A stretch of DNA of 64,000 bases from Vicugna vicugna. Lineage: Eukaryota. The notes under the pieces are model-generated. The model had not been told where the DNA came from and made no database searches. It saw only the letters and a list, made by a program, of their open reading frames with translations. Location of the stretch: assembly GCA_013265495.1 (NCBI GenBank), contig MU059972.1, positions 265,915 through 329,914 on the forward strand, read 5' to 3'. The translations under genes were made by a program, and so were the position numbers. How positions within the stretch are numbered: the stretch's first letter is position 1; each line of letters starts with the position of its first letter. Below are positions 60,679 through 61,802 of the stretch, in pieces.

Positions 60679-61802
60679 CTACCCAGCTTTCAGTACTGGG
60701 GCCTGGAGGTTGGCCCACCAGGCAGCAGGGCCACAGGAGATGAGGTGGGCCTGGCCTGGGGGACAGGGGGCCTCCAGGAAGTCAGGGTCAAGGATGCTGG
60801 AGACGGAGCCTGGGAACACAGTCCTGGCCGCGCCCCGGGCGCCCTCAGGGCGTGGAGCCCAGGCTGGCCTCCCAAGCGTAGGCGCTGCGGTCCCTGGGTG
60901 CAGATCCCCGTGGCTGTAATCCTCCACCACCTGTCTGGGCACCTCGGCTAGCACACGGTTAGCCAGCGCTGAGGGGGTTGCCTGCAGGGCCGGGGTTGGG
61001 AGTGCACTGTGTGTCTCCAGCCGGGGCCTCCCCATCCTCTGTCTTCCGTCTCCCCCGCCCCCATGGCTCACACCTCTTGCTCCCTCCTAGAGCCAGGTTC
61101 ACACTACGGTCTCCAGCCTCTAGTGGTCCTGCCCTAGCTCGTGACCACAAACAAGAACTCAGCTGGTGGCCACATGGGCCTGTTCTCGGCACTGCCGGGC
61201 AACATGGGACCACAGTGGCTATGGCAGCCAGACGCAGCTGGCACTGCGGGAGGCCCCTCAGGGCCCCTCTGGGTGGGTGTGACCCTGCTCTGGGCAGCGG
61301 GTGGAGGCAGGGAGGGAAGGCAGGTCCCGGGGCCCAGGCCCCGCGTGGACGCTGTAAGTGGGCCCCACACCCTGCATATCTCACTGTGTCACAGATGTTT
61401 GGAAGCCACTGGGGAGCCTGCATGTGGGGGTGCACTGCCCTCTGTGGTGTCAGCCTGAGGGTCTCATGACGAGAAGTTTTGCAGGGGCTGAGGCTGCTGA
61501 GGGCAGGCAGGGAGGCGCCCATTTCTCCCCAGCACTGCCTGAGGCCTGGCCCTCCACCCTGGCCCCAGTGGGAACCTCCGGAAGGGCACGAACTGCACGA
61601 TGTCCTGCAGGGCGGGCTCGCCCCGGGAGGAACGCAGGACACCGCCGTCTCCGTCCAGGAGCTGCGTGTCAGTGAAGTTGGCGTTGCCCACCCCCACGAC
61701 GAGGATGGACATGGGCAGGTGGGAGGCACGCACCGTGGCCTCCCACGTGTCCACCATGTTGGTCACCACGCCATCCGTCAGGATCAGCAGAACGTGGTAC
61801 TG
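60679..61802 (-). pseudogene. CPNE7: Copine 7, last two exons (61802..~61578 and 60981..), apparently disrupted; 5' part lies outside the window
   Basis: [75 protein letters not shown] and ATPSALANRVLAEVPRQVVEDYSH match the copine vWA C-terminus in the syntenic CPNE7 position. No in-frame donor follows VPFR, and the last exon is frameshifted relative to the EASLGSTP* ending. Gene identity is more certain than pseudogene status. Confidence 0.8.

Follow-up and report, generated by a model that had tools for sequence, protein, structure and literature searches.

The CPNE7 literature treats the gene as a factor in odontoblast differentiation and dentin repair (PMC10928576, PMC10637907; review PMC13733291) and describes early dental pulp ageing and fatty liver in Cpne7-deficient mice (PMC10928576, PMC10637907). 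This tooth link is background on CPNE7 and is not read from the sequence analysed here. The loci of cow, dog and horse were retrieved through their proteins (for example, cow NP_001179342.1 and horse XP_023493297.1), and the reference gene structure was established by rebuilding the cow and horse exons such that they translate exactly into the deposited proteins. The gene comprises 15 coding exons. In the cow and horse coding sequence reconstructions, the ancestral-type exon 14 is 237 nt long, runs from phase 0 to phase 0 and is followed by GT. The 237-nt length and a GTGAGT donor are common to cow, horse, dog and dromedary. The dromedary locus (assembly GCA_000803125.3, CM016647.2:30779863-30810818, gene at 10001-20956) was reached via KAB1260586.1, one of two sister protein models. 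A search of one literature library found no report of CPNE7 loss in camelids. Mammalian lineage-specific unitary pseudogenes combine a single-copy ancestral location, shared disabling mutations, neutral evolution and later lineage-specific lesions. Camelid CPNE7 would share these attributes and, set beside them, is a typical, routine lineage-specific gene loss.

The window analysed here is a 64,000-nucleotide stretch of the Vicugna vicugna genome that contains no N. Its CPNE7 copy is similar to the gene of other mammals such as cow and horse, with the same neighbourhood and, in exons 14 and 15, the same boundaries and the Copine vWA-like domain. It differs from the CPNE7 genes of cow, horse and dog in the missing exon 14 donor, a frameshift in exon 15, the replacement of 14 of 75 residues and a ratio of non-synonymous to synonymous changes (N:S) at neutral proportions. 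The dromedary gene is orthologous, with flanks that are 94–95% identical, and shares with the window 12 non-synonymous exon 14 changes and a 1-bp deletion. Nonetheless, dromedary CPNE7 keeps its GTGAGT donor, and it has acquired its own TAG in exon 15 and, in exon 14, ten additional non-synonymous changes. The features of the locus are listed in Table 1. We read the CPNE7 copy in the window as the 3' part of a unitary pseudogene, a single syntenic copy that is non-working in camelids; it would have escaped constraint on the camelid stem and lost its donor later. We place the probability of this reading at about 0.87.

Table 1 Features of the CPNE7 3' region and its downstream neighbour in the window; a slash marks a splice boundary.
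Feature	Position	Strand	Observation
Acceptor AG of exon 14	61803-61804	minus	Intact; context CCCTGGGTCCCCAG/CAGTAC; aligns with dromedary, cow, horse and dog acceptors
Exon 14 remnant (penultimate coding exon)	61572-61802	minus	231 of 237 ancestral nt left; open frame
Junction of the 17-bp net deletion	61569-61577	minus	From alignments; exact place ambiguous by a few bases owing to TTC microhomology
Nearest GT	61574-61575	minus	GAG/GTTCCC; 227-nt exon, last base 61576; phase 2; rough donor score -1.2
Second GT	61556-61557	minus	AGG/GTGGAG; 245-nt exon, last base 61558; phase 2; rough donor score 2.6
Stop met on read-through of intron 14	61464-61466	minus	Product ends ...PLQNFSS-stop
Intron 14	60982-61571	minus	Acceptor AG at 60983-60982 intact; 95.0% identical to dromedary
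Exon 15, to ancestral-frame stop at 60850-60848	60848-60981	minus	From alignment; reads ATPSALANRVLAEVPRQVVEDYSH...; stop now out of frame
Exon 15 codon 21	60919-60921	minus	GAT (D) in window; TAG (stop) in dromedary only; TAC or TTC in outgroups
1-bp deletion common to window and dromedary	60895-60896	minus	CTGCACCC-AGGG in both camelids; one base more in cow, horse and dog
DPEP1	30891-36414	minus	

The exon 14 remnant codes for a portion of the copine vWA-like domain. The frame opens at position 61802 of the minus strand, reaches ...VQFVPFR and continues into RFPLGP where a GT would be expected, and the exon itself is free of stops and internal frameshifts. The encoded peptide matches the Pfam Copine family (PF07002) with an E value of 1.8e-28 over profile positions 108–183 of 218. 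Alignment with residues 435–511 of cow CPNE7 yields 79% sequence identity; the cow, horse and dog sequences are 96–99% identical to one another. Protein searches place copine-7 closest to this peptide, as judged from named matches rather than from a tree. An exhaustive HMMER search with the same peptide returned copine fragments and full-length copines at no more than ~80% identity. One match at 81% is a dromedary protein annotated as 'Copine-7, partial' (KAB1260585.1), in which the unusual residues of the window recur.

The region between positions 50931 and 63999 of the window is collinear with the dromedary locus at 94–95% identity. The mismatch divergence between the two is 4.3% over 13 kb, a value that fits the comparison of a New World camelid with an Old World camel. 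DPEP1 is located downstream of CPNE7 on the same strand, and both dog and the collinear dromedary locus have RPL13 upstream of CPNE7, which gives the order RPL13 - CPNE7 - DPEP1. The first coding exon of DPEP1 and RPL13 lie ~24 kb and ~18 kb from exon 14, respectively. Alignments to dromedary, cow, horse and dog show that introns are retained at the window copy. DPEP1 served as a control for sequence quality: all of its coding segments were found and are well conserved relative to hippo DPEP1, and the only stops fall in introns spanned by the alignment, so that DPEP1 looks intact. The first-pass annotation had argued from intact neighbouring genes against a general sequence error, and the examination of DPEP1, the one neighbour analysed, agrees with that argument.

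Two side observations concern the locus and the protein databases. A 223-bp stretch at window positions 59947-60169, located downstream of the ancestral CPNE7 stop at a distance of ~680 bp, has no counterpart in the dromedary locus. Visual inspection revealed no obvious simple repeat in it, and the difference is probably a dromedary deletion. Separately, a protein cluster at 90% identity led by donkey copine-7 also includes several ruminant and hippo 'dipeptidase 1' proteins. Two of these members were inspected and are plain DPEP1 sequences without copine sequence; their inclusion looks like a clustering quirk, and a read-through gene model may link copine-7 and DPEP1 in that cluster.

At the exon 14 boundary, 17 bases are missing from the window, and with them the last six exon bases (two codons) and the entire GTGAGT donor. 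The absence of a donor after VQFVPFR had been noticed from the letters of the window alone; the alignments to dromedary, cow, horse and dog now account for it. In cow, horse and dog the exon ends with ...TTC CGG GAG CTC AAG A(G/A)(C/T) followed by GTGAGTGC, that is, FRELK(S/N) and the GTGAGT donor. The dromedary exon ends with ...TTC CAG GAG TTC AGG CAC followed by GTGAGTGC, that is, FQEFRH and the same donor, and the window reads ...TTC CGG AGG TTC CCA, 17 bases shorter. Across the deletion junction, dromedary has GAGTTCAGGCAC followed by GTGAGTGCTTCCCA, compared with AGGTTCCCA in the window. The gap can be described either as a single 17-bp loss between two TTC triplets accompanied by two adjacent substitutions, or as losses of 6 bp and 11 bp with zero substitutions. 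The TTC microhomology at the flanks suggests that replication slippage deleted the exon 14 donor. Because the donor is kept in dromedary and in all outgroups, the deletion is derived on the lineage of the window, that is, on the llama/alpaca side. As far as the aligned genomes indicate, it is specific to that lineage, from which it is known in one assembly.

The consequences for splicing were assessed with a rough donor matrix based on literature frequencies. With this matrix the native exon 14 donors of dromedary, cow, horse and dog score 5.7–8.8. The nearest GT dinucleotides of the window yield exons of 227 nt and 245 nt, and both are out of frame, in accord with the earlier reading of the sequence: each leaves the exon in phase 2 and leads to a premature stop in the last exon (QPPQRWLTVC-stop, 10 codons into that exon). 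The sole downstream GT that preserves the frame defines a 267-nt exon and scores -2.4. Any CPNE7 transcript would be predicted either to retain intron 14 and run into the stop at 61466-61464, or to use one of the weak cryptic GT dinucleotides at 227 nt or 245 nt. With intron retention, as with either of these two cryptic donors, the conserved C-terminal segment would be lost.

The last coding exon, exon 15, carries the 1-bp deletion that the window and dromedary have in common. Anchors on the two sides of the deletion are 49 nt apart in both camelids, compared with 50 nt in cow and horse. The deletion shifts the frame of exon 15, such that the open frame extends to a stop at 60681-60679. Since this part of the protein is a C-terminal tail that varies among mammals, the shared frameshift, although genuine, is mild by itself, and the deletion alone offers weak evidence that the gene was inactivated.

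Parsimony was used to assign exon 14 changes to branches, and cow, horse and dog served as the outgroups. The N/S counts are 12/3 on the camelid stem, 6/4 on the window branch and 10/8 on the dromedary branch, and 0/13, 1/10 and 3/9 for cow, horse and dog, respectively. Altogether, the camelid branches accumulated 28 N and 15 S changes compared with 4 N and 32 S for the three outgroups (Fisher p=8.5e-7). When codons 1–28 of exon 15 are included, the corresponding counts are 40 N:22 S in camelids and 8 N:39 S in the outgroups (p=7e-7). The neutral expectation was computed from the ancestral exon 14 with transitions and CpG transitions up-weighted, which resulted in an expected N fraction of 0.66–0.72. 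The camelid fraction of 0.65 is at this level (p=0.4–1.0), in contrast to the outgroup fraction of 0.11 (p about 1e-12).

Pairwise NG86 comparisons yield dN/dS values of 0.25–0.38 overall and of 0.38 between window and dromedary. For the latter pair, exon 14 has a dS of 0.235 and a dN of 0.090; both exceed the divergence of the adjacent intron, 0.050, dS by a wide margin. The first-pass annotation had taken a dN/dS near 1 as support for loss. Neutral proportions were indeed found for the branch-wise N:S counts, whereas the pairwise value of 0.38 is not near 1. We attribute the low pairwise ratios, which rest on small numbers, to CpG-rich third positions that inflate dS. With a dS of 0.235 set against 0.05 in the intron, pairwise NG86 dN/dS was dropped as a test of neutrality and the branch-wise counts were used instead. 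The observed/expected CpG ratio of exon 14 is 0.8–1.1 in the species with an intact gene, compared with 0.27 in the intron, and CpG transitions account for 16 of the 43 camelid-branch changes in exon 14. The exon has diverged faster than its intron, as window and dromedary are 88.4% identical in exon 14 and 95.0% identical in intron 14.

At the protein level, the window differs from the inferred cow/horse/dog ancestor at 14 of the first 75 residues and from cow at 16 of 77, close to the initial estimate of about 15 in 75. Several of these replacements had been ascribed to CpG transitions. This holds for R>W, A>V, R>Q and both D>N replacements; the proposed R>H is withdrawn as a camelid change because H is shared with cow, horse and dog and differed only from the human sequence used in that first reading. 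The conservation of the altered sites was measured in 149 diverse copine representatives. The 12 non-synonymous changes common to window and dromedary include D15N (D in 99%), R20W (R in 93% and W in none), I34L (98%) and M46T (99%). The window-only changes I35V, D42N and R66Q affect sites that are 98–99% conserved in these copines, and among the dromedary-only changes, Y2H and S32P are at sites conserved in 100% and A26T and A41T at sites conserved in 97–99%.

Every cow exon was aligned to the dromedary CPNE7 gene. Inactivating mutations in upstream exons, for which the first-pass annotation had recommended a search, were identified there in the start codon and in exons 1, 5, 6 and 8. The start codon is changed from ATG to ACG, and exon 1 contains a 7-bp insertion, a 2-bp deletion and further small insertions. 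Exon 5 contains a TAA stop, exon 6 combines a 2-bp deletion with an acceptor changed from AG to AC, and exon 8 has a 2-bp deletion. The same exon alignment of horse and dog CPNE7 revealed no frame-breaking indel within exons. The strong upstream lesions were thus read in dromedary, and the lesions read directly in the window genome are those of exons 14 and 15. Database searches that yielded copine-7 from dozens of other mammals returned no intact camelid copine-7 protein, and the only camelid CPNE7 proteins retrieved were two 'partial' models from the dromedary locus. Both KAB1260585.1 and KAB1260586.1, deposited as 'Copine-7, partial', are annotation artefacts of a pseudogene; their translations step round the lesions, and neither should serve as a copine sequence.

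Three other explanations were weighed against a unitary pseudogene. The 17-bp gap could be an assembly or consensus error in a genome that in reality keeps its donor as dromedary does. The deletion has been seen in one assembly of the lineage, and independent camelid DNA was sought by two exact-pattern scans of metagenome contigs, one with a pattern across the junction that allowed either allele and the other with a camelid-specific exon motif. Both scans for camelid host DNA came back empty. A protein search with the 131-residue open frame around exon 14 likewise gave nothing above 79% identity, so that the collection contains no camelid read-assembly ORF derived from exon 14. However, the flanks of the gap align cleanly and contain no N and no low-complexity sequence, and TTC microhomologies border the gap, which is common for natural deletions. 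The 13 kb aligned between window and dromedary contain 37 indels, six of which are at least 10 bp long (about one per 2 kb), so that a 17-bp deletion is an ordinary neutral difference between the two genomes. The nearby DPEP1 is clean as well. An error at this position is therefore very unlikely, and even if it had occurred, it would leave untouched both the neutral pattern of substitution and the frameshift in common with dromedary.

A gene that still functions, by means of a cryptic donor or intron retention and with a new C-terminus, would be in keeping with the open frame of exon 14, the intact acceptors and the in-frame GT at 267 nt. Yet this GT falls far below the native donors on the rough matrix, substitutions have accumulated at neutral proportions and altered near-invariant copine residues, and the dromedary orthologue has lost its start codon and acquired stops and frameshifts, which together leave this explanation scarcely credible. 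It is just as improbable that the window copy is a decayed duplicate of an intact CPNE7 located elsewhere in the camelid genome. The analysis covered the locus and the protein databases. The copy described here occupies the ancestral position adjoining DPEP1, the collinear dromedary locus has RPL13 on its upstream side, and the retained introns of the window copy show that it is no retrocopy. The database searches, moreover, returned none of the intact camelid copine-7 protein that such a second gene would be expected to provide.

The preferred reading is thus that of a unitary pseudogene, and the lineage-specific loss of CPNE7 proposed at the outset is supported by the deleted donor, the frameshift in the last exon, the neutral pattern of substitution and the broken dromedary orthologue. 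The shared substitutions and the shared 1-bp deletion suggest that constraint was relaxed before the two camelid lineages split, and CPNE7 appears, on this comparative evidence, to have lost its constraint on the camelid stem, before the divergence of Old World and New World camelids. In the sequence of events that we propose, neutral substitutions, many of them CpG transitions at near-invariant residues, would have begun to accumulate on the stem, and the 17-bp donor deletion would have followed on the llama/alpaca side as a secondary lesion. With constraint already lost on the stem, the donor deletion would be a later hit on a dead gene and not the cause of its loss.

A broader proposition, which we regard as unlikely, is that every extant camelid is a natural CPNE7 knockout and that the loss either relates to some camelid trait or is offset by another factor. 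Dentin and dental pulp maintenance and liver lipid handling, which are disturbed in Cpne7-deficient mice (PMC10928576, PMC10637907), would be examples of where this might apply. If it is true that the whole family has lived without CPNE7 for tens of millions of years, the gene would be dispensable for working teeth, and camelids would constitute a natural knockout for comparison with the mouse.
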